Shown here in pieces: positions 1 through 47,698 of a DNA stretch of 64,000 nucleotides. Below the pieces are notes generated by a model. That model was not told the DNA's origin and ran no database searches. It was given only the letters and a program-made list of their open reading frames with translations. Positions within the stretch are counted from its first letter, which is position 1. The number at the start of each line of letters is the position of its first letter. The DNA is taken from contig NC_043009.1 in assembly GCF_006345805.1 (NCBI RefSeq), positions 56,916,001 to 56,980,000 of the forward strand, in the 5' to 3' direction. A program made the position numbers and the translations under genes. Origin of the DNA: Octopus sinensis (Eukaryota).

Positions 1-725
1 TTCTAACCTCCTCTACAAAATTTATATTTTGCCATCCAAATGATTTTGAAGACTGCGAATAAATGATAATCAGATGGGGCAATGTCCAGTGAATATGGTG
101 GGTGGGGCATCGTTTCCAATTCAAACTGCTCCAGTTCTTGAAATGTTATCCTCACTGTATGTGGCCAAGCATTATCTTGATGGAAGGACACCTTTCATCT
201 TGAAACCAAAGATGGTCATTTTTCTTCAAGCGTTGACTTAAGCCACTCAAGCTGCTCACAGTCGATCTCCTTTGTTATTGTTTGGTTTGGGTTTAAAAGT
301 TCAAAGTGGGCTAAACCTTTCATATCCCAACAAACAGAAAACAACATCTTATATGGGTGAAGACCTTCTTTAGTCTGGGGTGCCAGTGTTTCTCCTTTCC
401 CTACCCACTGTCTTCAGTGCTTGAGATTTTTATAAAGAACCCATTTCTCATTACCAGTCACTGTTCGGTCCCAAAAAGGCTCATTTGTGAGATGTGACAG
501 CAATGAAGAACACACATCCACTCCCTGTGCACAATAAGACTCAGAAAGTTTGTGAGGAATCCACTGACCCAATTTGCTGACTTTTCCAATGGCACGCAAG
601 TGTCGATGAATGGTTGAATGACTAAATCTAAGCTTCTCAACTAGTTCCTCAACATTTATGATGGGATTTTCTTCTACCAGGGTTTGCAGGCTGTCCTTGT
701 CTAGCTCTACAGATCTTGCAGGATG
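1..725 (-). mobile_element. Degenerate mariner (DD34D) transposase relic
   Basis: Minus-strand frames give HTH region (LQTLVEENPIINVEEL..STIHRHLR), WIPHKL, VTGNEKWVLY and HQDNAWPHT..HPPYSLDIAPSDYHLF, which are canonical mariner motifs; broken by frameshifts and stops. Confidence 0.9.
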
Positions 726-992
726 AGGCGTATCTTCTACCCTGTAGTTTCCAGCTCAGAATTTCTGGAACCACTGTTGAAACTGGCTTACACTTATTGT
801 CTACTTCCCATATACTGCATTAATATTCCTCACGCTCTTTGTTGTATTGATGCCTTTATTAAACTGATAAAGCAAAATATGCCAAATATGTTCCTTTGTC
901 TCTTCCATAATAGCTTTGAAAATATAAATTTTAAAATCAAACTGTACTCTTCAAAACTTGTACTAAAAATAAGCAGAAGGTAAAATTACTAC

Positions 993-1040
993 CTGCTTTT
1001 ATAGCAAGTTGATGCAGGTAATTTATCCTGTCCGCTCCAG
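993..1040 (-). CDS. Candidate exon, 48 nt: xGADRINYLHQLAIKA
   Basis: Donor GCAG|gtagta; first AG after a T9C tract; phase 1-1 open; acceptor context weak. Confidence 0.25.
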
Positions 1041-1459: not shown

Positions 1460-4400
1460 TATATATATTGGCATCCTTTCTGTCTCGGGAGACAATGGAG
1501 TTGCGCATGAAGTAGTCTAGTCCAGCTTTTATATTTCATGTCCTGATACATTTCCTGCTGTGGCTGTGTAGTCCTATCCTGGACAAACACTCCCTCTGGC
1601 AGGTACCGCAAATGTAGCAAAGACTGTTCTTGGCTGGTTGTAGTGCCATAGTCTCTTGTTTACGTCTCTTCCTTTCTTTCCATTTCTCCTCTCTCTCTCT
1701 GTCACTCTTTTGTATTCCCTCTTTTACTGTATGTCGCCATTCTCCACGGTTGCCGGCAACTGCCTCCCAACTGCTAATATTGATGTTGCAGGCCATCATA
1801 TCCCTTTTGCAAACATCCTTGTAACGTAAGATCGGTCTACCCACAGACCTAGTACCCCTAGCAAGCTCTCCGTAGAGTATGTCCTTGGGGATTCTGCCAT
1901 CTTTCATACAGCTAACATGCCCAAGCCATCTCATACGTCTTTGTGTGAGGAGTGCAAACATGCTTGGTATTCCTGCTTGCCTGAGGACATCTTTGTTGGG
2001 GATATGATTCTGCCATTTGATACGGAGGATTTTTCGGAGGCAGCGCAGGTGAAAGATGTTTAGGCGACGCTCTTGGATGTGTATAGCGTCTGAGTACACA
2101 TGCCTGGTAGATCTTCATTTTCGTGGTCTTGGTCAGCTTATTGTTGTCCCAAGCCCGTTTGGAGAGTTGGGCCATCGCAGCACTGCCTTGCCAATGCGTA
2201 TATTGAGCTCAGTGTCAAGGGATAGGTTGTAGGTGACGGTAGAGCCCAGATAGGTAAACTTCTCCACCTCTTGTAATCTGTGGTCTCCAATATGTATGTT
2301 TGGGATGTCCGATGTAGCCTGGCCCATGATGTTGGTCTTCTTAAGGCTGATAGCTAAGCCAAAGTCGTTACATGCTTGCTCAAAACAGTTAATGAGCCTT
2401 TGGAGGGCTTCTTCTGTGTGTGTTACCAGAGCGGCATCATCAGCAAATAACATCTCCTTGATCAGGACGTTTCTGATTTTGGTCTTGGCACGCAGGTGCA
2501 AGAGATTGAACAGTTTCCCGTCACTTCTACTGTGCAGAAACACTCCATCATCTGATGTCTGAAAGGCATGTGAAAGTAAGAGCGAGAAGAAGATGCCAAA
2601 CAATGTAGGAGCGAGGACACAGCCTTGCTTTACCCCGTTTTTTATTTGGAAGGCGGCTGATGTTGAACCGTTGTGCTGTATGGTGTCTTGGATGTCATCA
2701 TGGAAAGACTTGATGATCCTCAGCAGCTTTGGTGGACATCCCATTTTTTGGAGCAGGAGGAAGAGGCCTGTTCTGCTTACCGAGTCAAAAGCCTTTGTTA
2801 GATCAATGAAGGCCATATATAATGGCATTTTCTGCTCTCTGGACTTCTCCTGAAGTTGGCGTATGGAGAATATCATATCGATAGTTGATCTGCTTCTTCT
2901 AAAGCCACACTGCGATTCCGGATAGATTCGAGAAGCAAGTAGTTGTAGCCTGGCCAGGATAACGCGGGCAAAGGTCTTTCCAACAGTGCTTAGAAGGGAT
3001 ATACCACGGTAATTGTTACAATCACCACGGTCACCTTTGTTTTTGTAAAGCGTAATGATGTTGGCATCCCGCATATCCTGAGGGACTGTACCCTCTTCCC
3101 AGCACTGACACAGAAGCTCATGAAGGTGCCGAAGCAGGATGGTGTTTTTGCCGGCTTTGATGATCTCTGAGGGGATGCCGTCTTTTCCCGGAGCCTTATT
3201 TCTTGCTAGGGAGTCAACAGCCTTGGTGAGCTCTGCTATAGATGGTGGACTGTCAAGTTCGCAAATGACTGGCAAGATCTTGACACTCTCGACTGCAGCC
3301 TCAGACACTGTGGTCTCCCGTGAGTAGAGATCCTGGTAGTGCTCCACCCATCTATCCATTTGCTTGCCTTGATCCCTGATGAAATCTCCAGTAGTTGATT
3401 TCAGAGGGGCTGACTTGGTTGCGGATGGACCGAGGGCCTTCTTCAAACCGGCATACATCCCACGGGTGTCGCCCCTGTCAGCAGCTGACTGGATACTCTG
3501 ACAGATTTCCTGCCAATACCTATTTGCACAGCGTCTGGCTGTCAGTTGGGTTTTATTTCGTGCCTTTCTGAGTTCTTCAAGTGACTTTGTAGAAGAGTCA
3601 CTCTTGTATTGCACCAGAGCTGCATGCTTTGCTTCGATAACTGGCTCCAGCTCTGAGAGCCCAGCATTGAACCAATCTGGGTTTTGCCTTTCTCTCATGC
3701 CGAAAGTATCCAATGATGTCGTATACAAGGCTTCCCTGATATAGTCCCACCTACTTTCAGCAGAGGAGGTTGGGCAGCTACTGAGGGCAACCTTGATAGA
3801 AGCAGCAAAACATTTTCGCAGTGTAGGGTCCGAGGTTTTGGCGGTGTTGATGCGTGGTCAGCCCACTTTCTTGGAGCGATGGACTTTTTTAGGCAGAATC
3901 CTCACCCTGCTTCAAATTAGTGAGTGGTCTGTGTCACAATCCGCGCTGTGGTAACTGCGGGTCAATAGAGTAGAATTCAGAAAGGATCTCCGTGTAATGA
4001 TGAGATCCAGCTGATGCCAGTGGTGAGATCTTGGATGTCTCCAGGATGCCTTGTGGGATGGCTTGTTGGTAAAGAATGTGTTTGTGATGCACAGGTTGTG
4101 GTATGTGCAGAATTCGAGTAGTCTCTGACCATTGTCATTCATGTTGCCAATACCAAAGTGTCCAACACAAATGAGCCACGAATCATGGTCAGATCCCATG
4201 CGAGCGTTAAAATCCCCTAGAAGGTAGATATTTTCAGTCGTTGGTATATTTTCTATGACACAGTTGAGATCTTTGTAGAACTGGTCCTTGGTCTCCTCTG
4301 AGCTGTAGAGAGTGGGAGCATAGATGCTGAGTAGATGTACTGAGCCAGAAGAAGTCGAGAGGCACAGTGAGAGGATACGCTCAGTGCCTCCCGATGGTGG

Positions 4401-5125
4401 TTCTATTGAGGAGAGTAGTGAATTTCTCACTGCAAAGCCAACGCCATGTTGACGAGGTTCTTCTGGATCTCTTCCCTGCCAAAAGAAGGTGAAATCCTGC
4501 TCTTTGAGTTTGCTGTTTGAGGGAAGTCTTGTCTCCTGCAGCCCAGCAATATCTATGTTGAGCCTCTTTAGTTCACGGTCAATGATGGCCGTTTTCCTTG
4601 TGTCTTCAATTCTGAGAAGATCATCAGATATTCCAGGACACATGGTCCTGACATTCCAGCTTGCCAACCGCAGAACTGGTGTTTTCTTGACTTTTAGTTG
4701 CTTGCCTGGTGCAGAGGTTGCAGGCCGCTTTTCGAGTCATACTCTTAGCTCCAAACACCCAATGGAGCAGGCGGCTTGTGGCGGGTCAGCACCTTATTAA
4801 CTGGGGGCTGCCCAGCTTGAGGTGGGCAGTAGCTAACCAATAGGACACGGAAGTCCCTCCCACCGTCAGAGGTAACCCGTAGCGCCCATATTTTACGCCA
4901 ATCTGAATGGACTTATCACTCGTGACTGTTACCTCCCGTGTTGTTTCTGCAGCTTTCTACAGCAGCACTGAAGTGTCCTCTCCAGTTTTGTGCAGGCCTG
5001 GGCTATAGGTAAGAAAGTCCTGGGTAGTCCAATCGTCAGGTTTCCTCTCTCGACCTTGCTGATGTAGTCCAGTGGAGTGCAGTGCATTACGTTTGGCACA
5101 GCTTGGTTGCAGGAGCTAAACCCTC
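1460..5125 (-). mobile_element. Near full-length RTE-clade (BovB/Expander-like) LINE, APE + RT + C-terminal zinc finger, disrupted
   Basis: APE ORF 3912-4667 (SWNVRT, LQETRL, GDFNAR, ADCDTDH), RT ORF 2133-3728 (NYRGISLLS, FIDLTKAFDSV, GVKQGCVLAPTLF, LFADD), C-term 1536-2175 ending CGTCQRECLSRIGLHSHSRKC; frameshifts near 3910 and 2170, in-frame TGA near 3860, small deletion near 2095. Confidence 0.93.
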
Positions 5126-5929: not shown

Positions 5930-5963
<34 letters not shown>

Positions 5964-5975
5964 TGTGTGTGTGAT
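5815..5975. repeat. (TG)n microsatellite
   Basis: Direct reading. Confidence 0.95.
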
Positions 5976-6134
5976 AGGAAGAATTGATAATGTATACATA
6001 CTCATGCAAAGATATACAAATATTAACACACATATACTTACAAAAAACATACAATGCTAACAAAAATACACACATAATAACGATGTACAGTCACAACACA
6101 TAACATGCATAATATGGAATAAGTTGAAACTTAC

Positions 6135-6149
6135 CTAGAGAGCGTAAAG
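6135..6149 (-). CDS. Micro-exon, 15 nt: (A)LRSL
   Basis: Acceptor gtttttattttttag|CT, donor CTAG|gtaagt; positionally paralogous to the 18-nt exon. Confidence 0.72.
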   Translation of the reverse strand, partial: LYAL

Positions 6150-7263
6150 CTAAAAAATAAAAACAAACAATTTAATAATATTTTTAACTGATATCAACAC
6201 ACACACACACGCACAGACAATCAAAAATGGGCGTGCAATTACAATATGTAAGATAATTTTTGTCCTTCAGTAGTAACTGTTATTTCTTATTTGCTTACTA
6301 CTAGAAATTATGAAAAATGGCTAATATTTACTTCAAGCTTTGCTTTTGTTACTTTTATTCAAACCTCTGAAAACCAGTCGCAACACATGGCTCTGATGCT
6401 CCCCCACCATTCCTGCTCATGATCAGAGAGATACACATATTGGAAGTCATTATGGAACATTCTCAAGTGGTTAAGGTCAAGCAACTAACAAGCAAATATT
6501 TGGTATGAAAGAGAATATTTTCTATAACAATGTCTCTTCTCCAGCAAATCACCACCTGAATCTGTCTGAAGTATAATTGGATATCGGTCAGTCTCAAAGC
6601 ATTGATGTCAAAGTCGCAAAAGCAAAGTTTGAAGGGAATAGCAGCCAGTTCCTTTGATTTCTAGATAGAAGCAAACTGAAAATAACACTTACTGACCAAA
6701 GGCAACAAAAAAAATTGTTACACAATGTTATATATACAAGCAAATTGCACTAAAAAAATTGTATGAATGCAGGTAATTAAAGAAACATAATAAACAAATT
6801 ACATACAGAACAGAGGGAATTGAGAATGTAAAGACTATGACCCACATCTAAGGACTGAAGCACATGCATCAAATATGATCTACACATGAAGCTTGTGATT
6901 CACATGTGAAGACTCCAATCCAGATTGGAAGAATGTGATCCACCATGTCAGAAGAATGTGGTCTACAATTTAAACCATTGCTATCACAATAAAAGCTGGA
7001 AGATATCATAGATTCTGGACATGTGTCACTAAACAAGCCTTTACACAGTTTCTCATCTTGCTACAGATACTAACCAAATATCCCTATTATGATATAGCAC
7101 CAATTAAAAAAAATTAGACAAAGCATTCGATTTCAAAATAATATGTGACGATAAAAGAGAGAATTGCAAAGGCTTCATTGTCTTTGACCATAAATGTATG
7201 TCATTAGAACTTAATCACAGCCAAACAACAACAAAGAGAACATGAGAAAAGAAACATTCATAC

Positions 7264-7296
7264 CAGTTAGGGTCCTCTCAATGTCATCTGAAACAC
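7264..7296 (-). CDS. Micro-exon, 33 nt: (G)VSDDIERTLT
   Basis: Acceptor tttttcttttgtttag|GT, donor ACTG|gtatga. Confidence 0.75.
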
Positions 7297-7355
7297 CTAA
7301 ACAAAAGAAAAATATTAATTAGGAAATGAAAATATAGTCTGTGCAATAGCATATT

Positions 7356-7392
<37 letters not shown>

Positions 7393-7439
7393 AAATGTAT
7401 GCTAGTACCACCTGAATGGCACTTGTGCCGGTGGCACAT

Positions 7440-7760
7440 TGAAAGCATCATGTGAGGATGGTCGATGCCTATACTGCCTCACAGGTTCCTATGCTGGTGG
7501 TGTGTAAAATGCACCATTCAAGCGTTGTCAATGCCAGTGCCACCTGACTGGCTCCTGTGCTGGTGGAATGTAAAAAGCACCCACAATACTCTCAGAGTGG
7601 TGGCATTAGGAAGGGCATCCAGCTGTAAAAGCCTTGCCAGATCAGACTGCAGCATGGTGCAGCCTCCTGGCTTGCTAGCCTCAGTCACACCATCCAACCC
7701 ATGTCAGCATGAAAAGTGGATGTTAAATAATGATGATGATGATGATGATGATGATGACTA
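7440..7760 (+). mobile_element. RTE 3'-tail-derived short element ending in (GAT)n; copies at about 13180-13550, 13810-14130 and 61095-61240 (+), about 8560-8870 and 63480-64000 (-)
   Basis: Shared core ggcattaggaagggcatccagctgta..gccagatcaga..ccaacccatgccagcatggaaa + (gat)n, the same as the 3' UTR of the RTE copy at 25058-25982. Confidence 0.75.
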
Positions 7761-7874
7761 TGACGAGATATGCGTATGAAACTCTGTATGCATAAATTTC
7801 ATTCGTACATTAACTGTGTCTTTTAACATACGACAGGATTGTCATGAATGGAGTGCTTGTAACCATAAATCTAT

Positions 7875-8550
7875 ATTCTCATCAAATCATATTATTCTGT
7901 GACCCTGAATTTGGAAACTTGTCGTAGTTGCATTTAATGAGTACAAGCTAAATAACCCGTAATACTACTCCCCACTACCACCACTTCTGTTTCGAAATGT
8001 GAGGAATTTAAACCCCACACATCAAGGTATCGTACTTTGAGTCACATAGAAATAGAAGCTAAGACAGAGTCTTCCGGTGAGCAGTCAAGGGTATTTTCCA
8101 CTACCGCTGACTCTGATACTACCACAAGCCCCATAATTCAGTCAGATACTAGAGCCAAACATCTCATCACACCCCAATCAGGTACTACAGATCATTACTG
8201 GCAACTACCTCTCCTCCTAAACACAAGTATAATTTCAAACCTGGGAAAATATATCCCTTGAATGGAAATTGTGACCAAGCTAATGTACTGTATGAGTGTT
8301 TGGTACCTTTCTGGTTCTATCACTAGATCTTAAACCAGATTGATTACTAATCCTGTGAACCTCAGAATCTCAACCCATAGACACGCTCCTTGTAATGATA
8401 GTCTGAAATCCAATATCTTCTTAGCTGAACATTTTCACTCACTCAATTCCGAAATGCTTGGTTCAGGCCAAGGCCCAACCTTCTAGTGGTAGCAAGATAT
8501 TTTGCAAACTGCATCTTCTTGAAGTTCTGTTTGTGGAATAATTGTAACAG
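7875..8550 (+). mobile_element. Penelope-like element relic (RT thumb/linker/GIY-YIG); copies at 9590-10430 and 14650-15405
   Basis: WCNPPFANN..HRYYIIFD (thumb/linker), YPLNGNCDQTNVLYK and ITRSYIRLITNPVKLKITTHRH..LAEHFHSL (degenerate GIY-YIG). Confidence 0.7.
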
Positions 8551-9072
8551 ACTAACTATCAGTTAGCACATAAAAAGCATCATTCAAGTGTGGTCGATGC
8601 CAGTGTCCCTGGACTGGCTCCCATGCTGATGACACATAAAAAGCATCATGTGAGTATGGTCGATGACAATGCCACCTGAGTGGATCCCATGCTAGTAGAA
8701 TATAAAAAGGACCCACAACACTCTCAGAGTGGTTGACATTAGGAAGGGCATCCAGCTGTAAGAACTTTGCCAGATCAGACTGGAACCTGGTGCAGCCTCC
8801 AAGTTTACCAGTCCTCAGTCGAACCATCCAACCCATGCCAGCATGAAAAGTGGCCATTGAATAATGATGATGATGATGACGATGACGAGATATGCGTATG
8901 AAACTATGTATGCATAAATTTCATTCCTACATAAAATGTGTCTCTTAACATACGATAGGATTGTCATGAATGGAGTGCTTTTAACCATAAATCTATTTGA
9001 TTAGGGCAGACTTGCAACAAAAAAACAAACAGAACATGGTAACAGGATAATAATATTAAAATAAATTCATAC

Positions 9073-9099
9073 CGGGTGAATGAAGCTTTTTCTCTTCAT
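9073..9099 (-). CDS. Micro-exon, 27 nt: xEEKKLHSP
   Basis: Acceptor ttctcgtttttgcag|AT, donor CCCG|gtatga. Confidence 0.75.
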
Positions 9100-11135
9100 C
9101 TGCAAAAACGAGAAAAATATTAGAAAATGAAAATATAATCGTGTAATCAGTTCTAATGAAGGGACGAGGGATAAGAATGAATACATATATGTTCATAGAT
9201 ACAGATTTTGGTGTGTGCAAAAGCATATGAAAGTGTCAGTTTTCATGTAAATGTATGTATATACATGTGTACAAATGTGTATGAATCTATGTATGTGTAC
9301 CTGTCATAAATATATACATACATGTATATATACATATATACTCATATGTACATGAATGTCTATATGCATGCATATAAGTGCATCTGTAAGACAACCTCCC
9401 AAGGACTAACTGCATTTGATACATCTGCTAAATCTCATAAGTGTGGAAATAATTAGCCATCCATAAAGGCAATAGTAACTATAATCTAAGATCAAATGAT
9501 ACAAAAAAACAGGGAGGTAGTGGTGACACCCAGAATGCTGAGCTTCCAACAACAGATCAAATCCCAGGGGAATGGGAAGTCATAGGAATACAAACACCAG
9601 CAAATCTAGGAAGAATCAAGTAGGTTGGTGTAACCCTCCCTTTGCTAATAACATAAAACATCCTATAACAAGGACCTTTAATAACCTGTCAGAGAAAAAA
9701 CATCTCCCTTCAACATAGGTATTACATAATCTTTGATAGAAACCATCAAATCATATTATTCTATGATCCTGAATTTGGAAACTTGTCGTAGTTGCATTTA
9801 ATAAGCTCTAATGACTCTTACTACTACTCCCCACTACCACCACCACTTCCGTTTCCAAATGTGAGGAATTTAAACCCCAAACTGCAAGGTATCTTACTTT
9901 GAATCACATAGAAATAGAAGCTAGGACTGAATCTTTGAGTTGGGCAATCAAGAATATTTCCCACTACCGCTGACTCTGATACTACCACAAGCCCCATAAT
10001 TGAGCCAGATACTAGAGCCAAACATCTCATCACACCCCAATCAGGTACTACAGATAATTACAGACAACTACCTCTCCTCCTAAACACAAGTATAATTTCA
10101 AACCTGGGAAAATCTATCCTTTGAATGGAAATTGTGACCAAACTAATGTGCTGTATAAGTTTTTAGCACCTTCTGGTTCTATCACTAGATCTTACATCAG
10201 ATTGATTACTAATCCTGTGAAGCTCAAAATCACAACCCATAGACATATTCCTTGTAATGATAATCTGAAATCCAATATCTTCTTAGCTGAACATTTTCAC
10301 TCACTCAATTCCGAAATTGTCAGTTCTGGCCAAAGCCCAACCTTCTAGTGGTAGCGAGATATTTTGCAAACTGCGTCTTCTTGAATTTCTGTTTGTGGAA
10401 TAATTGTAACAGACTAACTGTCTATTAATGTAAGTATATATTAAGATTTACATTCAAGAACTTTACGAGAAAGAATATAAAACCTACTTTATTGCATCTC
10501 AACTTGTTCAAATTCATTCCTTGTTTTATTGCAACTTACATGGTGCCTTTGTTTAGTTTCCATTGTAAATTACATAAATTATCTTGCATTTCTTCATCAG
10601 CTTATGATTGAAAGTAAGAGTGATTATACAAAGAAACAAGTGTGCATGTTACACTGGGAGCACATACATGAAAAACATTTGAATCCCTATTTTGTGTATC
10701 AGTATGTATGTGTGTGCAGGAATACTACACAGTTGTGCATACGTATGTGTATTAAAGGCAATCATCCGAAAGTTGGCAAGAGTATCCATATAAGCATACA
10801 AAATTATTTCATATATGTATGAGCTTGCACATATTGGTGCTTGCAAATGAGCATGCATGCACATATCTATGCATGTTCATGAATAAATGCATGTGTGTGT
10901 GTGTGTGTGTGTGTGTGAATGTTAGGGCAAGTTGATAATGGATACATACTCATACAAGATATAAAAATATTTACATCAAAGATACTCACAACAAACAACA
11001 CAAATACATATTCTCACAATATACAAACACCAGAAACATATATCACCAGCAATACAAATACACACACAATCACAATGAACTCAGTCACAACACTTAAACA
11101 TGCATTAACACTTAAAGAAATAAATCAAAACTTAC

Positions 11136-11153
11136 ACAAGACACTGGCTGTAA
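11136..11153 (-). CDS. Micro-exon, 18 nt: xTASVL
   Basis: Acceptor gtttttattttttag|TT, donor TTGT|gtaagt. Confidence 0.72.
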
Positions 11154-12094
11154 CTAAAAAATAAAAACAAAAAAAAAATTAATTAGACTTTCAATTAATA
11201 AGTTTCACACACACACAAACACAGGGAAATGGGCATGCAGTTAGATTTGGTAAAATAATTTTTGTCCTTCAGTAGTAACTGTTATTTCTTATTTGCTTAC
11301 TACTAGAAATTATGAAAAATGGCTAATATTTACTTCAAGCTTTGCTTTTGTTATTTTTATTCAAACCTCTGAAACCCACTCTCAACACATGGCTCTGATG
11401 CTCCCCCACTATTCCTGCTCATGATCAGAGAGATACGCATATTGGAAGCCATTATGGAACATTCTCAAGTGGTTAAGGTCAAACAACTAACAAGCAAATA
11501 TTTGGTATGAAAGAGAATATTTTCTATAACAATGTCTCTTCTCCAGCAACTCACCACTGAATCTGCCTGAAGTATAATTGGATATCGGTCAGTGTCAAAG
11601 CATTGATGTCAAAGTCACAAAAGTAAAGTTTAAAAGTAGTAATAGTGACTTCATTTGATTTCTAGATAGAAGCAAATGGGAAATAACACTTACTGACCAT
11701 AGACAACAACAAAAAAAAATTGTTACACAGTGTTATGTATACAAGCAAATTGCACTAAAAAAATTGTATGAATGCAGGTAATTAAAAAAACATAATAAAC
11801 ATATTACATAGAGAACAGAGGGAATTGAGAATGTAAAGACTATGACCCACATCTAAGGACTGAAGGACATGCATCAAATATGATCTACACATGAAGCTTG
11901 TGATTCATATATGAAGACTCCAATCCAGATTGGAAGAATGTGATCCACCACGTCAGAAGAATGTGGTCTAAACCTGAGGAATGTGACCCACATCGGAAGA
12001 ATGTGATACAGACCCAAATAATGTGATCTGTGTTGGAAGGTTGTAGTCCAAATCTGAAGCTGAATATAATACAGAGAGACAATCTGTAACTTAC

Positions 12095-12103
12095 AAGGGC
12101 AAG
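12095..12103 (-). CDS. Candidate 9-nt micro-exon (CTTGCCCTT)
   Basis: Strong donor CTT|gtaagt with long pyrimidine tract upstream; the AG giving 9 nt is the second AG (the first gives 17 nt). Confidence 0.3.
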
Positions 12104-13058
12104 CTGGAGCACTTGTAAGTAAAGAAGAAAACAAGACACATACTATCTCAATAAAATAAGGTGGATATATAACAAAATATAGTAATTTCAGAATATTCAG
12201 AGGAGTAGTGAAAACATATTTCAAATGATATTTGAAATGAGAAGTTAAATATCATTGACATTTGAAGTAGATGAATGTGTTTAATGTTAAATTCCACATA
12301 GGCTCTGGTTCAGTACACCTATGATTAAAGCTCTTGTCTTTGAAAACATCAGGTCTACATTATCCAGTATGGCCTTCCTTTCCCAAGACAACTGAATGTA
12401 ATGTCCAACAGATTTCACTGCCATTTTTAGCAGGTCAGTCAACAACAAAAATCCTGCCCTGTTCCCTCCTACATAAATATTAGGTGAAACACAGTTCATT
12501 CCTTCAGACTAAATGGAAACTAAATATATTCTAAAACTTGTTGGGTTGTCATGTAAATTGTAGAGGTTTTAACCTTAATCCTCTCCTACATTCTTAAAAG
12601 AGAGAAGACACATTGAGTAATGTAGCCCAGAGTATCCAATGTCTAAGATGATTAAACATCATCATCATCATTGTTATTAAAGTCTGCCTTTAATGCTAGC
12701 ATGGGTAATACTGATGCTCAGGTAAATTTAATAAAAGAAAGCCAAAATTTAATGTTTAAACCATTGCTATCACAACAAAAGCTGGAATATATCATAGATT
12801 CTTGATATGTGTCACTTAACAAGCCTTTACACAGTTTCTCATCTTGCTAGAGATACTAACCAAATAGCCCTATACACTACCATCTAAAAAAAAGTGACAA
12901 AGCATTCAGTTCCAAAATAAGGTATGAAGATAAAAGAGAGAATTGCAAAGGCTTCAGTGTCTTTGACCATAAATCTATGTCATTAGAATTTACTCACAGC
13001 CAAACAACAACAAAGAGAACATGAGAAAGGGTTATAATAAGAAAAGAAACATTCATAC

Positions 13059-13079
13059 CAGTTACAGGGCTCACATAAT
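13059..13079 (-). CDS. Micro-exon, 21 nt: (D)YVSPVT
   Basis: Paralogue of the 33-nt exon; ancestral acceptor tttag is now ttttg, and the next AG 9 nt downstream (ttttaag|AT) keeps frame; donor ACTG|gtatga. Confidence 0.6.
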
Positions 13080-13736
13080 CTTAAAAACCAAAACAAAAGA
13101 AAAAAATTAATTAGGAAATGAAAATATAATCTGTGCAACAGCATATTAAAGTGTGTTTGTTTGTGAATGTAACATTATGCCAGTGACACCTGATTCATGC
13201 TCATGCAGGTGGCACAATAAAAGCATCATTTGAGTGTGGTTGACGCCCGTGTCTCTTAACTGGCTCCCATGCTGGTGGCATGCAAAAAACAACATTCAAG
13301 CATGTTCATTGCCAGAGCCACCTGACTGGCCCCCATGCTGGTGGAATATAAAAAGCATCCATAATACTCTCAAATCGGTTGGTGTTAGGAAGGGCATCCA
13401 GCCGGAAAAACCTTGCCAGATCAGATTGCAGCCTCGTGCAGCCTTCTGGCTTGATAGTACTCAGTTAAACCATGCAACCCATGCCAACATGGAAAGTGGA
13501 CGTTAAATGATTATGATGTTGATGATGATGATGATGACGACGACGACAACAAGATATGCGTATGAAACTTTGTATGCATAAATTTCATTCCTACATAAAT
13601 TGTGTCTTTTAACATACAACAGGATTGTCATGAATGGAGTGCTTGTAACCATAAATCTATTTGATTAGGGCAGACTTGCAACAAAAAAACAAACAGAACA
13701 TGGTAACAGGATAATAATATTAAAATAAATTCATAC

Positions 13737-13763
13737 CGGGTGGAGGAAGCTTTTTCCCATTAT
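13737..13763 (-). CDS. Micro-exon, 27 nt: xNGKKLPPP
   Basis: Acceptor ttttttcgtttttgcag|AT, donor CCCG|gtatga. Confidence 0.75.
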
Positions 13764-14314
13764 CTGCAAAAACGAAAAAAATATTAGAAAATGAAAATAT
13801 AATCATGTAATCATGTGAGGATGGTTGATGCCTATACTGCCTCACAGGTTCCTATGCTGGTGGTGTGTAAAATGCACCATTCAAGCGTTGTCAATGCCAG
13901 TGCCACCTGACTGGCTCCTGTGCTGGTGGAATGTAAAAAGCACCCACAACACTATCAGAGTGGCTGGCATTAGGAAGGGCATCCAGCTGTAAAAACCTTG
14001 CCAGATCAGACTGCAGCATGGTGCAGCCTCCTGGCTTGCTAGCCTCAGTCACACCATCCAACCCATGTCAGCATGAAAAGTGGATGTTAAATAATGATGA
14101 TGATGATGATGATGATGATGACGATGACGAGATATGCGTATGAAACTATGTATGCATAAATTTCATTCCTACATAAAATGTGTCTCTTAACATACGATAG
14201 GATTGTCATGAATGGAGTGCTTTTAACCATAAATCTATTTGATTAGGGCAGACTTGCAACAAAATAACAAAGAGAACATGGTAACGGGATAATAATATTA
14301 AAATAAATTCATTC

Positions 14315-14341
14315 CGGATGAAGGAGGCTTTTCCTCTTCAT
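14315..14341 (-). pseudogene. 27-nt micro-exon copy with dead donor: xEEEKPPSS
   Basis: Acceptor ctcatttttgcag|AT intact; donor reads CCG|gaatga versus CCG|gtatga in the two paralogues. Confidence 0.7.
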
Positions 14342-15739
14342 CTGCAAAAATGAGAAAAATATTAGAAAATGAAAATATAATCGTGTAATCAGTTCTAATG
14401 AAGGGACGAGGGATAAGAATGAATACATATATGTTCATATATACGGATTTTGGTATGTGCAAAAGCATATGAAAGTGTCAGTCTGCATGTAAATGTATGT
14501 ATATACCTGTGTACAAATGTGTATGAATCTATGTATGTGTACCTATCATAAATATATACATATATGTATACAAATATATATACACATATTTATATGAATG
14601 TCTATATGTATGCATATAAGTGCATCTGTAAGACAACCTCCCAAGGGGAGTGGGAAGTCATAGGAATACAAACACCAGCAAATCTAGGAAGCATCAAATA
14701 TGTTGGTGTAACCCTCCCTTTGCTAATAACACAATAGATCCTATGACAAGAATCTTTAATAACCTATCAGAGAAAAACATCTCCCTTCAACATAGGTATT
14801 ACATAATCTTTGATAGAAAACCATCAAATCGTTTATTGTGTGACCCTGAATTTGGAAACTTGTCGTAGTTGCATTTAATAAGTACAAGCTAAATAAGTCG
14901 TAATGCAACTCCACACTACCACCACTTTTGTTTGCAAATGTGAGGAAATTAAACCCCAATCTTCAAGGTATCATACTTTGAGTCACATAGAAATAGAAGC
15001 TAAGACTGTGTCTTCCGGTGAGCAGTCAAGGGTATTTTCCACTACCGCTGACTCTGATGCTACCACAAGCCCCATAATTGAGCCAGATACTAGAGCCAAA
15101 CATCTCATCACACCCCAATCAGGTACTACAGATCATTACTGGCAACTACATCTCCTCCAAAACAAAAGTATAATTTTCAACCTGGGAAAATCTATCCTTT
15201 GAATGGAAATTGTGACCAAACTAAGGTACTGTATGAGAGTTTGGTACCTTCTGGTTCTACCACTAGATCTTAAACCAGATTGATTACTAATCCTGTGAAG
15301 CTCAAAATCACAACCCATAGACATGCTCCTTGTAATGATAGTCTAAAATCCAATATCTTCTTAGCTGAATATTTTCACTCATTCAATTCCGAAATGGTCG
15401 GCTCTGGCAAAAATTCTCATCATTCTATCAGAAACCTTGCTGTAGATGTACGTGTTTAATGTTAAATTTCGCATTGACCCTGTACTATGATATTGGATTC
15501 ATAAGGCTATAACAGTAGTTTTCTATTATATTTTGCATAATATATATTCTGTCTTTCTACAATTATTTCATTATCATCATTGTTATTTTTTTTATTTACC
15601 CATTACTTGCTATTGTACATTATCTTATTTTATTATCTTATTTTATTTCATTTTACTTTTCTTCATTCCATTATACTTTTTCTAACAATGATTGGTGTTC
15701 ATTAAAGATTTCCCTTGACCCACTTTCCAAGGATCAAGA

Positions 15740-21154: not shown

Positions 21155-24110
21155 ATGAAATCTGCCAATCGCAAGTCTTCTTTTCAGGTACATTACACTT
21201 CTGCCCCCCATCCCAGGGGCCCACAGGCCCACACCTCCCACACCCTCAGAGTTGGCACACTCAATGTTGGCACATTGAAAGGTAGGTCTGGTGAGATTGT
21301 CGAGCTGCTTGAACGGAGACGTGTGGATTTGTGCTGCGTCCAAGAAGTAAGGTGGAGAGGAGGTTCCGCTAGGTTCCTTACAGGCAAGGAATACAGGTAC
21401 AAGATTTCCTGTGCAAGGAACACTGAAGGGGTTGGGGGCGTGGGTATACTTCTTGCAGAGAAATGGGTTGATAAGGTAGTCGAGGTAGTCAGAGTATGTG
21501 ACAGAATACTTAAGATTAGATTAGTGCTCTGTCATAGGTCAGCAACCATTATCTCGGCATATGCCCCCTCAGCCGGGGCTACCAGAAGGACAAAAAGACC
21601 GATTCTATGACACCCTATTACAGACTACCTCGTTGACAAATGACAGTGACCTTCTCTTTGTGGCAGGTGACTTCAATAGACATGTTGGACGGCATGTCGG
21701 GGGCTTCCATGGCATACACGGGGGCTACGGTTTTGGTTCTCGCAATGAGGAGGGAACCAGGCTGCTGGAGTTCTGCGATGCAAATGACCTTATGATTTGC
21801 AATACCAACTTCAGGAAACCCACTTCTCACCTAGTCACCTACCGTTCTGGCAGACACACTAGCCAGATCGACTACATCCTCGCCAGAAAGAGGGAAAGAG
21901 GGCTGCTTATAAATGCCAAAACCTTTCCAGGCGAGGAATGTAACCCACAACATAGACTGGTAGTTAGTGACTTTAGGATCAGGACTAAGAGGACGGCCAG
22001 AAGACGACCAACATGGAGAAGAAGGATCTGGAAGCTTAAAGATCCTGCAAATGGACAGAGATTTAGGGACATATTACTTGAAGCCTTTGACGAAATAGAA
22101 GGGGATATGGCATCACAAAATATGGAAACCAAATGGAAGTTGCTACGGGACAATCTGCTGAGTGCCACTGACCAGATCTGTGGATGGAGCAAAGTCCCAT
22201 CTTGTCCCAGGGTAACGTGGTGGTGAAACAATGTTGTAGACAGGGCTATTAGAGACAAGAGACAGGCTTGGAAGGACTGGAGGAATGGCAGTAGTAGGGA
22301 ATTGTATCAGACTGCGAAAAGAGAAGCTAGGAGACAGATATATTCAGCCAGAGGGGAAGCAGATAAGAAAAAATTTGCCAATGTTCTGCGCCGTGAGGAC
22401 GAAAGACTTGAGGTGTTTCGTGTTGCAAGTGAGTGAGAGAGAATTGTGATGTGGTAGCAGAGAAATGTGTTCGCATGGATGATGGTTCACTTGCGCTAAA
22501 TGAGGATGCAAAGAGAGAGGTTTGGAGATGCCACTATGAAAGGTTGCTCAACAAAGAGAATGAATGGGATAAAGAGAGTCTGCCGAATGTCGACCCAATA
22601 AAGGGACCAGCTATCCGAGTTGACAGTTCCATGGTAGTTAAGGCAATTAGAAGCATGAAGACAGGGAAAGCCCCAAGCCCATCAGGAATTACTGCTGAGA
22701 TGCTCAAAATATCTGGCAGTGTCAGCTATAGCCTAGTCACCCGTATAGTTAACCAGGTGATACACGAAGGAGTCATACCCAATGACTGGTGTAGTGGCAT
22801 AATAGTCAACTGCTACAAAGGTAAAGGTGACGCCCTAGATACAAATAATTACAGAGGTATCAAGCTGTTGGATCAGGTAATGAATGTTACGGAAAGGGTC
22901 ATAGCCCAACTGATTAGAGAGAGTGTCAACCTGGACGAGATGCAGTTTGGTTTCATGCCAGGGAAAAGCACCACCGATGCCATATTTCTGGTGAGACAGC
23001 TGCAGGAGAAATACCTAGCCAAAGATAAAACTCTGTTCCTGGCTTTCATTGACTTAGAGAAAGCCTTTGACAGGATCCCCCATTCCCTTATCTGGTGGTC
23101 AATGAGGAAACTAGGGATAGATGAATGGTTAGTGAGAGCTGTGCATGCCATGTACAGGAACGCTGTTAGTAAGGTGAGGGTTGGCAACGTGTACAGTGAA
23201 GAATTCCGGGTGGAGGTTGGGGTCCACCAAGGCTCAGTCCTCAGCCCTCTCCTATTTATCATAGTCCTCCAGGCAATAATGGAGGAATTCAAGACAGGAT
23301 GCCCCTGGGAGCTCCTCTATGCTGATGACCTTGCTCTAATTGCTGAGTCACAATCAGAACTCAAAGAGAAGTTTCAGGTGTGGAAGCAAGGATTAGAATC
23401 GAAGGGCCTCAGAGTCAATCTAGCTAAAACCAAAGTCCTAATAACTAGGAAGGTAAACAAATCTCAAACGCCTTCAGGTAGATGGCCCTGCTCGATCTGT
23501 AGAAAAGGCATAGGTAGGAACTCTATAAGATGCACCAAGTGTAAGCTATGGACACATAAGAGGTGCAGCAATGTCAAAGGAAGGCTAACTAGGAATATAG
23601 TTTTTGTATGTGGCAGATGCTCTGGTGCAATAAACACTGAAAATGCGCAGAGACCATCTTCCGCCACATTCCAGAGAGAAAAACTAGAAATAGTTGATAG
23701 TTTCTGTTACCTAGGTGATCAAGTCAGTAGTGGGGGTGGGTGTGCCGAAAGTGTAACTGCTAGAGTAAGAATAGCCTGGGCAAAGTTCAGAGAACTCTTA
23801 CCTCTGCTGGTGACAAAAGGCCTCTCACTCAGAGTAAAAGGCAGACTGTATGATGCATGTGTACGAACAGCCATGCTACATGGCAGTGAAACATGGGCTG
23901 TGACTGCTGAGGATATGCATAAGCTCACAAGAAATGAAGCCAGTATGCTCCGATGGATGTGTAATGTCAGTGTTCATACCCGACAGAGTGTAAGTGCCTT
24001 GAGAGAAAAGTTGGACCTAAGAAGCATCAGTTGTGGTGTGCAAGAGAGACGTCTACGCTGGTATGGACACGTGGTAAGTATGGATGAAGATAGTTGTGTG
24101 AAATTAAGTG
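21155..24110 (+). mobile_element. RTE-clade LINE, APE + RT with a Cys/His-rich insert, 3'-truncated and disrupted
   Basis: GTLNVGTL, CCVQEVRW, VAGDFN, SQIDYIL, PQHRLVV (APE); NYRGIKLL, FIDLEKAFDRI, GVHQGSVLSPLLF, LYADDL (RT); several frameshifts and stops. Confidence 0.93.
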
Positions 24111-24359
24111 TCAGGCAATGCATGACACTTAATTTGAGGTCTCTGTTTGACAGAAATAGTAACCAAATCTGTCTTGAATCATACATTATTATCTTGAGAA
24201 AGTGGGAGAGCATTTGGTATGCTTTGACTAAATCTTATAGAGCATCAATAACATACAAGGTAAGCAAGACCGGAATATTGTCAACATAGGTGTATTGGAA
24301 GAGGAGCTGAAAGGGCTTGATATAATATAAATAACAAATAAATTCAGTTCAATACTTAC

Positions 24360-25982: not shown

Positions 25983-26166
25983 AAGCACACACACACACAC
26001 ACACAGACACACACACACACACACACAAAAACACACACACACACACACACACTCATAAGTAAGTCCATATATTAATCTTTGCAGGATTTCTCTTCTTGAG
26101 AAAAATTGACGCCAAGTTTACCTCTAATCATAAGTTATTTTCTTTCAAAATTTGCAGAATACATAC

Positions 26167-26232
26167 CTCCTTGATTGGGTTGCTGTGTGCTTTGTTCTCC
26201 ATTTCCTCCAACTTGAGGACTTTTAGCAGTAG
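26167..26232 (-). CDS. Exon, 66 nt: (A)TAKSPQVGGNGEQSTQQPNQG
   Basis: Acceptor catttcttttaag|CT, donor GGAG|gtatgt. Confidence 0.8.
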
Positions 26233-26359
26233 CTTAAAAGAAATGAACAAAAATAAGGAACTGAACAACAACATATGTACTGAGAGGTAAGATACAATAT
26301 GGATATTATACTATGATATATCCACACATTACATAGATCTCCAATTAGTCCCTCATGTC

Positions 26360-27250
26360 CTAACCTACACACGATGTCCTACTATAACAACACTCATCAT
26401 AGCTTGTCCCTCTACTGGATCAACATTTGGCAGGATCTCCTCCTCCCATTTATTCTCCACATTCAGCAGCCTTTCATAGTGGCTTCTCCAAGACTCTTTC
26501 TTTTCAGAATCATTAAAAACAAGTGCACCGTCATCCATGCCCACACATTTCCCTCCTGTGACATCACAATTTTCTTTCACACACTGTCTTGCAATCTGAA
26601 ATACTTCTGTTCTTTGGTCCTCAAGTCACTGAACATTGGCAAACTTCTTCTTTTCTGCTTCTCCCTTGGCTATGTAGAGCTGTCACACAGCCTCCCTTTG
26701 CCTATCTGTTACAGTTCCCTGTTACCTCCACTCTTCCAGGCTTTCCAGGTCTGTTTCTTTGCTCTAATGCCCTTGTCTACTATATTATTCCACAATCACA
26801 TTTCTCTGGGTCTGGAAGGGACTTTGCCCCAGCCCCACATTTGGTCTGTGGTGCTCAGTAAACTGTTTCGTAGGAATTTCCAACTACTCACTATGTCCAA
26901 AGTATGTGGCTCCCCCTCCCACTCGTCAAATTTCTCGATGACGATCTCCCTAAATCTCTGACTACGTGAAGCGTTCTTTAGCTTCCAAATCTTCTTTTCT
27001 GCATTGGTCTGCTGCTTGGCATTCTTCGACCTCGAGTCTAAAGTCAATAATGACAAATCTATTCTGGGGTTTACATTCTTCACCCAGGAGTGCCTTTGTA
27101 TTTATGAGCAACCCTGTGTACCACTGTCTGTTGACGGTGAAATAAATCTGGCTAGCAGAGTCACATGTTTGATAGGTTATCAACTGGTTGCCTGTCTTCC
27201 TGAAGTTAGTGTTGCAGATTAATAGGTTACATACATATGCGACTATGGAT
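26360..27250 (-). mobile_element. Degenerate RTE fragment (APE C-term/linker); duplicated at 29100-29695 and 30945-31270
   Basis: CNTNFRKT, KIWKLK, WRSHYERLLNVENKW match the + strand RTE at 21800-22600. Confidence 0.8.
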
Positions 27251-27299
27251 GCATTTAACATAGTATGAGATGAGCCTCTGTCACCAGGGTAGACATGAA

Positions 27300-27760
27300 C
27301 TTACATTTCAGATCTTAATCCAGAGAAGTTAAAACATGTTTCTATACGTGAATGTAGATATATGAGTTCCAATCGGAAGGTATTGAGACATTTGTTATGG
27401 TAACAGGATTGACTACACCGAGACTGACCTGCAGCTGTCATGTAGACTCATTAATTAATACATTCACACTCGCATTAGTTATAGCTGTGTTTCACAATAA
27501 ATTGTATGCTCTATGATAATCTTTGATATGACACCTTTTTCTGCTGCCAAGAATCTCATTAATTGTGTTGAGAAAGTCAAAGGAATTTTGGAAATTGTCA
27601 CAAGAAGTGATGACTCATGTATCGTATGGTTATGACCCTGAAACTATGCTAAAAGTCAGACCCCAATACAAATGAAAACATTTCAATATATTCAGGAAAT
27701 CCAAAAGAATGGTCCAAGACAGTTCCTATATATTTGCTACATTAGGAAATCTCTTTGTCT
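27300..27760 (+). mobile_element. Degenerate mariner fragment; duplicated at about 31350-31990
   Basis: gaaattgtcacaagaagtgatgactcatgtatcgtatggttatgaccctgaaact resembles IVTGDETWVYGYDPET. Confidence 0.6.
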
Positions 27761-27810
27761 TCACTCAATTTTTAAATATTCTCACACGGACATACAAAAA
27801 CACACACACA

Positions 27811-27841
<31 letters not shown>

Positions 27842-27976
27842 CACACACACACACACACACACTCATAAGTAAGTCCATATATTAATCTTTACGGGATTTC
27901 TCTTCTTGAGAAAAATTGAAGCCAAGTATATCTCTAATCATACGTTATTTTCTTTCAAAATTTGCAGAATACATAC

Positions 27977-28042
27977 CTCCTTGATTGGGTTGCTGTGTGC
28001 TTTGTTCTCCATTTCCTACATCTTGAGGACTTTTAGCAGTAA
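27977..28042 (-). CDS. Exon, 66 nt: (V)TAKSPQDVGNGEQSTQQPNQG
   Basis: Same splice sites as 28915-28980; two nonsynonymous differences. Confidence 0.8.
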
Positions 28043-28710
28043 CTTAAAAGAAATGAACAAAAAAATAAGGATCTGAACAACAACATATGTACTAAGATGT
28101 AAGATACATTATGGATAGTATACTATGATATATCCACACATTACATAGATCTCCAATTAGTCCCTCATGTTCTAACCTACACACGATGTCCTACTATAAC
28201 AACATATGTACTAAGATGTAAGATACAATATGGATATTATACTATGATATATCCACACATTACGTAGTCCTCCAATCAGACTCCCAATGTCTAACTCACT
28301 CAAGTTCTCCAACCATAATGACACTCATCATATATATATTTTCAAAGATATACATACAAATACATAGATTCACATGTGTGTATGTATATGTGAACATATA
28401 TATAATGTAGATTATATATATACATATATATATATATAGATATAAATACATATATATTTACATTCATATATATATATAAAAATATATCATCCAGAATACT
28501 TGCACTAAAGTAAGCAATGTTGTATCAAGTGTGTATTTTCAGAAAAGGACTACTTTGTGGGGAATACAGTGCTGAAATGATAAGTATCTTGTTTTCTTTG
28601 TCACTGTACGTCACTGTGAGTTTTCATCACGCTTTATATAAATATTTTCTACATTAGGAAATCTCATTGTCTTCACTCACTTTTTTAATATTTTCACACG
28701 TACATAAACA

Positions 28711-28802
<92 letters not shown>

Positions 28803-28914
28803 ATAAGTAAGTCCATATATTAATCTTTGCAGGATTTCTCTTCTTGAGAAAAATTGACGCCAAGTTTACCTCTAATCATAAGTTATTTTCTTTCAAAATT
28901 TGCAGAATACATAC

Positions 28915-28980
28915 CTCCTTGATTGGGTTGCTGTGTGCTTTGTTCTCCATTTCCTCCAACTTGAGGACTTTTAGCAGTAA
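28915..28980 (-). CDS. Exon, 66 nt: (V)TAKSPQVGGNGEQSTQQPNQG
   Basis: Acceptor catttcttttaag|TT, donor GGAG|gtatgt; phase 1-1. Confidence 0.8.
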
Positions 28981-29689
28981 CTTAAAAGAAATGAACAAAA
29001 ATAAGGAACTGAACAACAACATATGTACTGAGAGGTAAGATACAATATGGATATTATACTATGATATATCCACACATTACATAGATCTCCAATTAGTCCC
29101 TCATGTTCTAACATACACACGATGTCCTACTATAACAACACTCATCATAGCTTGTCCCTCTACTGGATCAACTTTTGGCAGGCTCACCTCCTCCCATTTA
29201 TTCTCCACATTCAGCAGCCTTTCATAATGGCTTCTCCAAGACTCTTTCTTTTCAGAATCATTAAAAACAAGTGCACCGTCATCCATGCCCACACATTTTC
29301 CTCCTGTGACATCACAATTTTCTTTCACACACTGCGTTGCTATCTGAAATACCTCTGTTCTTTGGTCCTCACGTAACTGCACATTTGCAAACTTCTTCTT
29401 TTCTGCTTCTCCCTTGGCTATGTAGAGCTGTCACACAGCCTCCCCTTGACTATCTGTTACAGTTCCAAGGTAGCCCCTCTGTTCCAGGCTTTCCAGGCCT
29501 GTTTCTTTGCTCTAATGCCCTTGTCTACTATATTATTCCACCATCACATTTCTCTGGGTCTGGAAGGGACTTTGCCCCTGCCCCACATTTGGTCTGTGGT
29601 GCTCAGTAAGCTATTTCGTAGGAATTTCCAACTACGCACTATGTCCAAAGAATGTGGCTCCTCCTCCCACTCATCAAATTTCTCGATGA

Positions 29690-30900
29690 CGATCTCTTTG
29701 TGCCAGATGATGAGAGATGAGAGTATGACAGAAGGAAAGAAACTATGGCTACCATAGTTGGGGGGAGAGAGCAAGAGAGAGAGAGAGAGAGAGAATTATC
29801 AAGAATGAGAGAGAGTGAGAGTGGAAGAGAATAAGAGTGAGAGAGATGGTGGTGATGTGTCAGGGCATACTCCTAAGCTATGGGAATGAGAATATAAATT
29901 AGATGGTAGAGCATTATTAATGGTACAAGTGGTGAGTAGGGAGATCATGTGAATGCAAAGAAAGGGGTAGGTGGAGAATACATAGAGGTGTGGAGGGTCA
30001 ACAGAATAGCAATGATACAGTGGACAGAGACAGAGCAGTGAGGACATGATTGGACTCTAGGAGTGAGGATGGAGAAATAAGTACTATGCATGAGAAAAGA
30101 AGAAATGTGAGGAAGAGAAGGGGAGATGTAGTTTGGTTTACTGGAGTAGGATGTGTGAAAAATGTTAATGTTTCATCTAAGTGAAACATGCAATGCTTCC
30201 GGAACTCAGTTTCACTCAAGTGAGCTAGTCTTCTCAAGAACCTCATATCATTAGACATCTTGGTTCATTGTCATCTACTCGGTGAGGCCCTCAGAGAATG
30301 ATTTCCAGCAGCTAAGTCCAAAATATAGAGCAAGCTCATACAACACTGTCATACTCTCAGTGTGCATACACAAACATATTATATTAGCCTCTATAGTGTT
30401 TCTCCACCTGCAAGATGTAGCAGCCAAATGTGCTTCTGATTATACCATTGCCTGAGATATATAGTGTGTAAATAAAAGACAAGGTAGGCTTGGCAGGAAT
30501 ATCTTTGATCATAAATCTACAGAAATAGAGGCTGAAGCTGGTATTAAAAAAATAAAAATAACAACAGTTAAGAGAACAAAAATCACATAAATCCAATTAA
30601 ACATCCACTCTCTCCTCGTCCATTACTTGTAGCACTTGGTGTTCTGCTTCTTTGAGCTTCAAAGGAAAATACAAGACAAGAAAAAGATAGCGCATTACCT
30701 TAGAAAAAATATAAAACAATAAATACAATAAACAATAAAATATATAGTATAATATAGAATACAACGTGGGTGTTATTTTACTTTATATTTACCAACCACT
30801 TAGTTTTGGGGTTCAATCCCACTGTATGCCACCATGAGCAAGTGTCTTCTAGTTTAGCCATGGGCCAATGAAAGACTTATGAGTAGATCTGGTAGATGTA
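29690..30900. repeat. About 1.2-kb near-identical duplication of 38440-39650 (carries the 42/30-nt exon)
   Basis: Base-for-base match from ctttgtgccagatgatgagaga onward with only scattered substitutions. Confidence 0.95.
30627..30656 (-). CDS. Exon, 30 nt: xQRSRTPSAT (paralogue of the 42-nt exon whose original donor is mutated)
   Basis: Same acceptor as 39399; original donor reads CGAG|gagaga; upstream ACAA|gtaatg gives a frame-preserving 30-nt exon. Confidence 0.45.
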
Positions 30901-39023: not shown

Positions 39024-39056
39024 TCGGTGAGGCCCTCAGAGAATGATTTCCAGCAG
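39024..39056 (-). CDS. Candidate exon, 33 nt: (A)AGNHSLRASP (identical copy at 30279-30311)
   Basis: Good acceptor ctatattttggacttag|CT, phase 1-1 and open, but weak donor CCGA|gtagat. Confidence 0.3.

Positions 39057-47648: not shown

Positions 47649-47698
<50 letters not shown>

Follow-up and report, generated by a model that had tools for sequence, protein, structure and literature searches.

The micro-exons of the schistosome micro-exon genes (MEGs) are very small and symmetrical, with lengths of 3–81 bp (bioRxiv 10.1101/2023.06.21.545858), and the genes that carry them have long introns rich in transposable elements (TEs), arise by tandem duplication, undergo accelerated evolution, are apparently restricted to platyhelminths and all encode a signal peptide (PMC4350168). 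Here we describe a group of micro-exon-like cassettes in a 64,000-nt stretch of the Octopus sinensis genome (contig NC_043009.1, positions 56,916,001 to 56,980,000 of the forward strand; hereafter the window, whose first letter is position 1). In each of them a short core bordered by splice-like signals lies between flanks that are more alike among the copies than the core itself. Three 27-nt segments, c1, c2 and c3, had been singled out by an earlier sequence-only reading of this DNA; they belong to a minus-strand set of at least five cassettes, and probably seven, the others being the paralogous pairs D_A/D_B and E_A/E_B. The likeness to MEGs lies in the tiny symmetrical putative exons (here 15–27 nt), the TE-rich surroundings, the tandem duplication and the fast evolution. 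However, the host is an octopus, the predicted peptides matched no protein at E≤10 and a search for a signal-peptide exon gave nothing convincing; the locus does not belong to the MEG families.

Other described systems share part of this pattern. In venom genes (snake PLA2, and the three-finger toxins with their ASSET segment switching) introns are more conserved than coding segments and exon segments are swapped (PMC7285919). In the octopus cassettes divergence is likewise 3–6 times lower in the flanks than in the cores, and in D and E the cores seem to have been exchanged rather than altered by point mutation. The venom exons are nevertheless of ordinary size, belong to known secreted proteins and have a demonstrated KA≥KS (nonsynonymous and synonymous divergence), whereas the octopus cores have no significant KA/KS and bear no sign of a toxin or of expression. 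Exon 2 of the major histocompatibility complex class II genes differs from its introns in that the introns are homogenised and the exons diverge under balancing or diversifying selection. We also observed mosaic identity tracts in non-coding flanks beside a short diverged segment, although one tract boundary falls inside a core and not at its border, and the cores are only putatively coding. The PEVK exon array of titin is made of tandemly duplicated small exons, of about 75–100 nt, for disordered regions rich in P, E, K and V. A short in-frame exon plus intron unit duplicated in tandem and a charged, proline-rich predicted peptide would be common to both, but the window contains no Ig/Fn3-type exon or other titin-like sequence, and we know of no report of PEVK exons outpacing their introns.

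Neural microexons of the SRRM4/eMIC type are comparable in length (3–27 nt) and in the conservation of their flanks; they are themselves conserved, however, whereas the core is the least conserved part of our cassettes. A UGC beside the 3' splice site was seen in the c type only (TTTTTGCAG). In Dscam-type arrays of mutually exclusive exons, one exon per transcript is chosen through competing RNA pairings. The tandem arrangement, common phase and 21–27-nt core lengths of the cassettes would fit such an array; the consensus fold of the five c and D cassettes is weak (−4.7 kcal/mol) and depends mostly on invariant pairs.

Divergence of the cores and of their flanks

On the minus strand we found the three 27-nt segments with the differences first reported, 5 of 27 between c1 and c2 and 4 of 27 between c1 and c3, and the amino-acid changes listed for them are correct in the frame then used. 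The c1 and c2 cores differ at positions 9079, 9081, 9093, 9095 and 9097, next to a run of 97 nt (8982–9078) without a single difference, and 2 substitutions are present in the 50 nt on the acceptor side. The c1 and c3 cores differ at positions 9076, 9081, 9084 and 9091, and four more differences were found in the 50 nt of intron that adjoin the donor. Near identity of the flanking intron is thus a property of the c1 and c2 pair and does not extend to c3, which also has an altered donor and is probably a decayed or skipped copy. When the 260 nt of unique DNA common to the three copies were compared, 8 of the 21 variable sites fell into the 27-nt core (Fisher, 3.9e-4), and a permutation scan statistic over all 27-nt windows also placed this clustering beyond chance (P = 0.003).

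We then compared cores and flanks across the paralogous cassettes. Among the c-type pairs the cores show 15–26% substitutions and the flanks 1–6%. For D_A and D_B, with the core defined in advance, the values are 30% (8/27) plus a 3-nt indel in the core against 4–9% (9/158) in the flanks (Fisher, 7e-4), and for the c–D pairs 52–63% against 28–33% (Fisher, 0.002–0.014), so that core divergence lies above flank divergence in all three kinds of pair. The E pair, which came from a scan for splice-like short segments, has cores that are about 30% identical between flanks that are about 78% identical, the borders tttttattttttAG and GTAAGTTT being fully conserved. Since the excess repeats in the c, D and E cassettes, it is a recurrent property of these positions and not one chance cluster.

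Overall, the cores gain substitutions and in-frame 3-nt indels 3–6 times faster than their flanks. They are also faster than the regional background: the D core (30% plus the indel) compares with 4% over 6255–6965 and 12–15% over 6995–7195, and the c1–c3 core (15%) with 4.6% over 540 nt, the numbers being small and the background heterogeneous in this comparison. Taken together, these data show that the original observation is real and broader than reported. The statement that exons diverge faster than introns stands as a contrast between core and flank, found again on independent branches (D pair, c–D and E pair), while the word exon is drawn from the splice-like borders. If the cores are coding, non-coding flanks would be more conserved between paralogues than the coding segment they enclose, as in genes of accelerated evolution.

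Splice signals and reading frame of the putative micro-exons

In every c or D cassette a branch-point-like CTAAT comes first, 20–31 nt before the acceptor, and is followed in turn by a U-rich tract, AG, the core and GTATGA. This CTAAT belongs to a 22-nt motif that recurs in each of the five cassettes with no more than one mismatch (6 matches, compared with 0.02 expected), whereas the D flanks as a whole align to the c-type flanks at only about 70% identity and the D and c cores align poorly. Matches of this 22-mer in five metagenome contigs were discarded as chance matches, their flanks being unrelated. The E cassettes have near-consensus splice signals with a GTAAGT donor. All core lengths (27, 27, 27, 24, 21, 15 and 18 nt) are multiples of three, so that the cores are both short and symmetrical, as are the micro-exons of MEGs. 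Across the window, splice-like micro-exon candidates number 32 on the minus strand (12, 11 and 9 in the three length classes modulo 3) and 19 on the plus strand (6, 6 and 7), with uniform lengths; only c, D and E, of 27, 24, 21, 15 and 18 nt, are kept as AG..GT pairs in both blocks of the duplication that contains them. Under a non-coding model, a rough estimate of the probability of such multiple-of-three lengths is 0.004–0.04.

Joined in genomic order, the seven cores give an open frame of phase 1-1 and 52 codons, which would encode EEEKPPSS-D-NGKKLPPP-D-YVSPVT-V-TASVL-Y-EEKKLHSP-D-DIERTLT-A-LRSL (EEEKPPSSDNGKKLPPPDYVSPVTVTASVLYEEKKLHSPDDIERTLTALRSL), a charged peptide, rich in proline and serine and apparently disordered. 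The three c copies all have two open frames: EEKKLHSP / NGKKLPPP / EEEKPPSS (frame 2) and MKRKSFIHP / IMGKSFLHP / MKRKSLLHP (frame 0), in the order c1, c2 and c3. In the EEKKLHSP frame all 8 independent changes are nonsynonymous and none is synonymous, an outcome that has a chance probability of about 0.15; in the MKRKSFIHP frame 3 of the 8 are synonymous and 5 are not, and the codon-position pattern is third > first > second. The earlier claim that every substitution changes an amino acid is therefore right for one frame and wrong for the other. The nonsynonymous excess in the c cores depends on the frame and is not significant, and an argument from nonsynonymous changes only fails.

Looking at the folding of the cassettes, we rejected an RNA gene or a hairpin-driven hotspot, as the single-strand folds are no better than those of shuffled sequences (z = 0.16 and −0.41). 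An upstream motif, TTCATTTYC, could pair with the donor region GGTATGAA in all five cassettes (9020–9140, minus strand, and the equivalent positions), which would loop out the acceptor and the core. All the pairs involved are invariant but one, in which a single side changes (U-G to C-G), and the pairing is energetically weak; it is only a hint of a possible splice regulation. On balance, we consider that the cassettes probably are, or recently were, spliced micro-exons.

The segmental duplication and its surroundings

The cassettes, of about 200 bases each, lie in a segmental duplication made of two blocks with sub-duplications inside (Table 1). A search of the window with a five-copy profile gave exactly five full copies and one truncated copy, with no further cassette elsewhere. 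Each block reads, along the plus strand, E, D, SINE (short interspersed nuclear element), c-type cassette, SINE, c-type cassette, TA-rich tract and a repeat called X. Block A has lost the core of its first c-type cassette, with a junction at 7874/7880. A SINE-like repeat with its (GAT)n tail stands at each c-type unit boundary, and its ancestry is unlike that of the adjoining unique DNA, the configuration of a repeat-mediated duplication. Two other exon candidates in the duplication were rejected: a family in the X repeats (7957–8034 and 9822–9896), in which a stop interrupts the shared frame of the third copy and the donors are inconsistent, and a 107/108-nt pair (6553–6660 and 11555–11661), whose lengths differ by 1 nt.

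Table 1. Positions of the cassettes, of the repeats associated with them and of the neighbouring LINE in the window.
Feature	Position	Strand	Details
c1, 27-nt micro-exon-like core	9073-9099	-	borders ttttgCAG / GTatga; core ATGAAGAGAAAAAGCTTCATTCACCCG
c2, 27-nt core	13737-13763	-	borders as c1, CAG / GTATGA; core ATAATGGGAAAAAGCTTCCTCCACCCG; cassette cut off at 13813 by the next SINE copy
c3, 27-nt core	14315-14341	-	core ATGAAGAGGAAAAGCCTCCTTCATCCG; CAG acceptor intact; GA replaces GT donor (14313-14314)
D_A, older paralogous cassette, 24-nt core	7264-7287	-	CAG / ATGACATTGAGAGGACCCTAACTG / GTATGA; an upstream TAG would give 33 nt, still a multiple of 3
D_B, older paralogous cassette, 21-nt core	13059-13079	-	AAG / ATTATGTGAGCCCTGTAACTG / GTATGA; weak AAG acceptor
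E_A, 15-nt micro-exon-like core, unrelated to c and D	6135-6149	-	tttttattttttAG / CTTTACGCTCTCTAG / GTAAGTtt
E_B, paralogue of E_A, 18-nt core	11136-11153	-	borders identical to E_A; core almost unalignable
22-nt motif holding CTAAT	9119-9140	-	GATTATATTTTCATTTYCTAAT; also 7318-7339, 13110-13131, 13783-13804, 14361-14382
Cassette extents, five-copy profile (nhmmer)	8958-9150 (c1)	-	others 13622-13814, 14200-14392, 12940-13142, 7161-7350
Truncated sixth copy, same profile	7836-7876		core deleted
SINE-like repeat with (GAT)n tail	8566-8890	+	directly upstream (plus strand) of cassette c1; equivalents 7434-7757, 13225-13550, 13810-14127
Whole segmental duplication	5944-15412		block A 5944-10890; block B 10892-15412
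Near-intact LINE	1536-4800	-	endonuclease ORF 3912-4667; reverse-transcriptase ORFs 2133-3728, 1536-2099

The flanks have a mosaic ancestry. Cassette c1 is identical to c3 over 8864–9022 and to c2 over 8982–9078, and the c1=c3 tract gave p = 0.011 in a GENECONV-like run test. The SINE parts (8566–8860, 7434–7729, 13225–13520 and 13810–14093) differ by about 20% from one unit to another, against 0–5% for the unique DNA beside them, meaning that ancestry switches sharply at the (GAT)n tract; the exception is 7447–7874 compared with 13810–14238, that is, the core-deleted unit of block A and the c3 unit, which are 97% identical. With an ancestry distinct from that of the unique DNA, the SINE parts could not serve as a neutral reference. 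The mosaic is consistent with unequal crossing-over, or conversion, that took place repeatedly with the SINE and (GAT)n sequences as anchors. The proposal of an intron-restricted gene conversion, made in the sequence-only reading, gains some support from the flank tracts, but the c1=c2 tract stops inside the core, between 9078 and 9079, and not at the exon–intron border.

The window as a whole is eukaryotic and crowded with repeats. The near-intact long interspersed nuclear element (LINE) at 1536–4800 has, for its larger reverse-transcriptase open reading frame (ORF), a protein of Octopus bimaculoides as closest named relative in a full HMMER scan (XP_014776570.1, 79% identity). A second LINE, with endonuclease and reverse-transcriptase ORFs, lies at 21155–24289 (plus strand), and a fragment 87% identical to it at 61977–63220 (plus strand), near the end of the window. 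From their motifs, we take the ORF remnants at 1–1000 (minus), 49229–49723 (minus), 47416–47760 (minus) and 44474–44926 (plus) to be, respectively, a mariner-type transposase, a pogo/Tigger-type helix-turn-helix domain, a GIY-YIG (Penelope-like) fragment and the integrase C-terminus of a long terminal repeat (LTR) retrotransposon. Also present are long TA/CA-rich tracts and dispersed copies of the SINE-like element with the (GAT)n tail, which is presumably the common octopus SINE, in agreement with the Octopus bimaculoides relative of the LINE. When 12 transposon ORFs of the window were looked up as exact sequences, none had an entry. An Rfam E-value scan of the 5.5–16 kb region gave only sub-threshold, repeat-like mir-297/466 matches in TA-rich tracts, and neither a match at the Rfam gathering threshold nor a tRNA was found in the whole window. 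Local duplication is not peculiar to the cassette region: 25986–26948 is 96% identical to 28733–29696, and 29696–30930 is 98.5% identical to 38440–39672, both pairs within 25986–31790 and 38440–39672. A run of 100 N, a scaffold gap, is located at 47092–47191.

Explanations of the variable cores and their significance

The explanation that we favour, with a probability of roughly 0.45, is that these are symmetrical micro-exon cassettes whose cores diverge fast and whose copies arose through unequal crossing-over at SINEs and microsatellites. As the mosaic suggests, an old tandem duplication would have produced the c and D types and a SINE would then have inserted between them. The SINE and (GAT)n sequences would afterwards have served as sites of unequal crossing-over, which multiplied the unit into blocks A and B. 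The flanks may have stayed alike through recent duplication, conversion-like homogenising tracts and, probably, a constraint on splicing signals. The cores would be coding, and their divergence would most likely come from selection for variation in the peptide segment they encode, or at least from a lack of constraint on it. Decay would be under way in some copies: c3 has lost its donor, the acceptor of D_B is AAG and a deletion has removed the core at 7874.

A number of observations weigh against the cores being exons. Splice-like pairs occur by chance at about 0.3–0.5 per kb, and a common open frame is expected by chance with P = 0.46 for five independent random segments. The c3 donor has GA instead of GT, and the D_B acceptor is AAG. 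The serial micro-exon peptides, read in both open frames and in several exon orders, had no match at E≤10 in a collection of 5.8 billion protein clusters, where only a chain of at least three exons was detectable, and a composite of all read-through cassette ORFs on both strands had no protein match either. No conventional host exon could be recognised anywhere in the 64 kb, and the minus strand between 14.4 and 40 kb yielded nothing convincing as a signal-peptide-like phase-1 first exon, although the gene ends may lie beyond the window. In MEGs, by comparison, micro-exons fill most of the coding region between a conventional 5' exon for the signal peptide and a conventional 3' exon, and transcripts with skipped exons encode secreted proteins. 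Dense substitution patches without consistent AG/GT borders were moreover found at 6634–6654 versus 11635–11655, 7942–7962 versus 9806–9821, 8073–8092 versus 9935–9955 and 10147–10167 versus 15225–15245, with 33–60% differences inside duplicated DNA that is otherwise 90–96% identical; clustered substitution is thus a general feature of the duplication. Finally, the eight c3-specific changes form one 87-nt patch (9023–9109), which crosses the core border, runs into the intron and removes the donor, and the c1=c2 tract ends within a core, as described above.

Most of these points would be accounted for if the cassettes were non-coding duplicated DNA, intronic or intergenic and rich in TEs, in which mutations cluster through multi-nucleotide events, through indel-associated or template-switch mutation near homopolymers, or through short conversion patches from diverged paralogues, the borders, lengths and frame being coincidental; the abundance of splice-like candidates on both strands goes in the same direction. 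We regard this as the most serious alternative, somewhat less probable than the explanation that we favour. With about one patch per kb and comparison, an excess that returns at one homologous position on each of three independent branches, and again in the E pair, is unlikely without a position-specific cause. In addition, five independent core lengths or length differences are all multiples of three against a uniform background, and the best-conserved elements of the flanks (CTAAT, U-tract, AG and GTATGA) are those that splicing needs. The exon reading of these segments is plausible, if unproven.

Should the micro-exons be real, their cores could still be neutral, either as a dispensable or redundant disordered segment or as pseudo-exons, with flanks slowed by purifying selection on splice signals and by gene conversion, which was the second option of the sequence-only reading. 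Such an origin appears less likely again than clustered mutation in non-coding DNA. It agrees with the conversion-like tracts in the flanks, with a conservation that is strongest on the splice signals, with the visible decay of three copies and with the lack of a significant nonsynonymous excess. It agrees less well with core divergence that is also above that of distant, presumably neutral parts of the blocks (D, 30% plus indel compared with 4% to 12–15%; E, about 70% compared with about 22%; c1–c3, 15% compared with 4.6%), a comparison of small numbers on a heterogeneous background. Positive selection and neutral cores are not separable here; given real exons, both explanations are viable, and diversifying selection is as such a plausible inference and not a result. 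An assembly artefact, in which mis-assembled haplotypes, collapsed or expanded repeats or sequencing errors would have created the differences, is suggested by the scaffold gap and the other local duplications and is nonetheless very improbable, since the copies differ by 5–20% with many indels and differing junctions, far beyond error or allelic levels, the gap is 32 kb away, and the pattern is found in the D and E paralogues as well.

The octopus genome is known for its SINE expansion. If the cassettes are indeed micro-exons with cores driven to diversify and introns kept alike, the locus could be part of an unannotated cephalopod gene of tandem symmetrical 15–27-nt micro-exons, an independent, non-flatworm counterpart of the schistosome MEGs in which SINE-mediated unequal crossing-over generates new variable segments; we put this forward as a tentative proposal. 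Were the cassettes not spliced, they would clearly illustrate how substitutions can cluster repeatedly at specific positions of neutral duplicated DNA, and would warn against inferring that an exon evolves faster than its intron from splice-like motifs alone. If they are spliced, a micro-exon architecture would have arisen independently in a cephalopod, the repeat-mediated copying of exon-plus-intron cassettes would be a general route to variable peptide modules, and the locus would point to a kind of gene overlooked by standard annotation.

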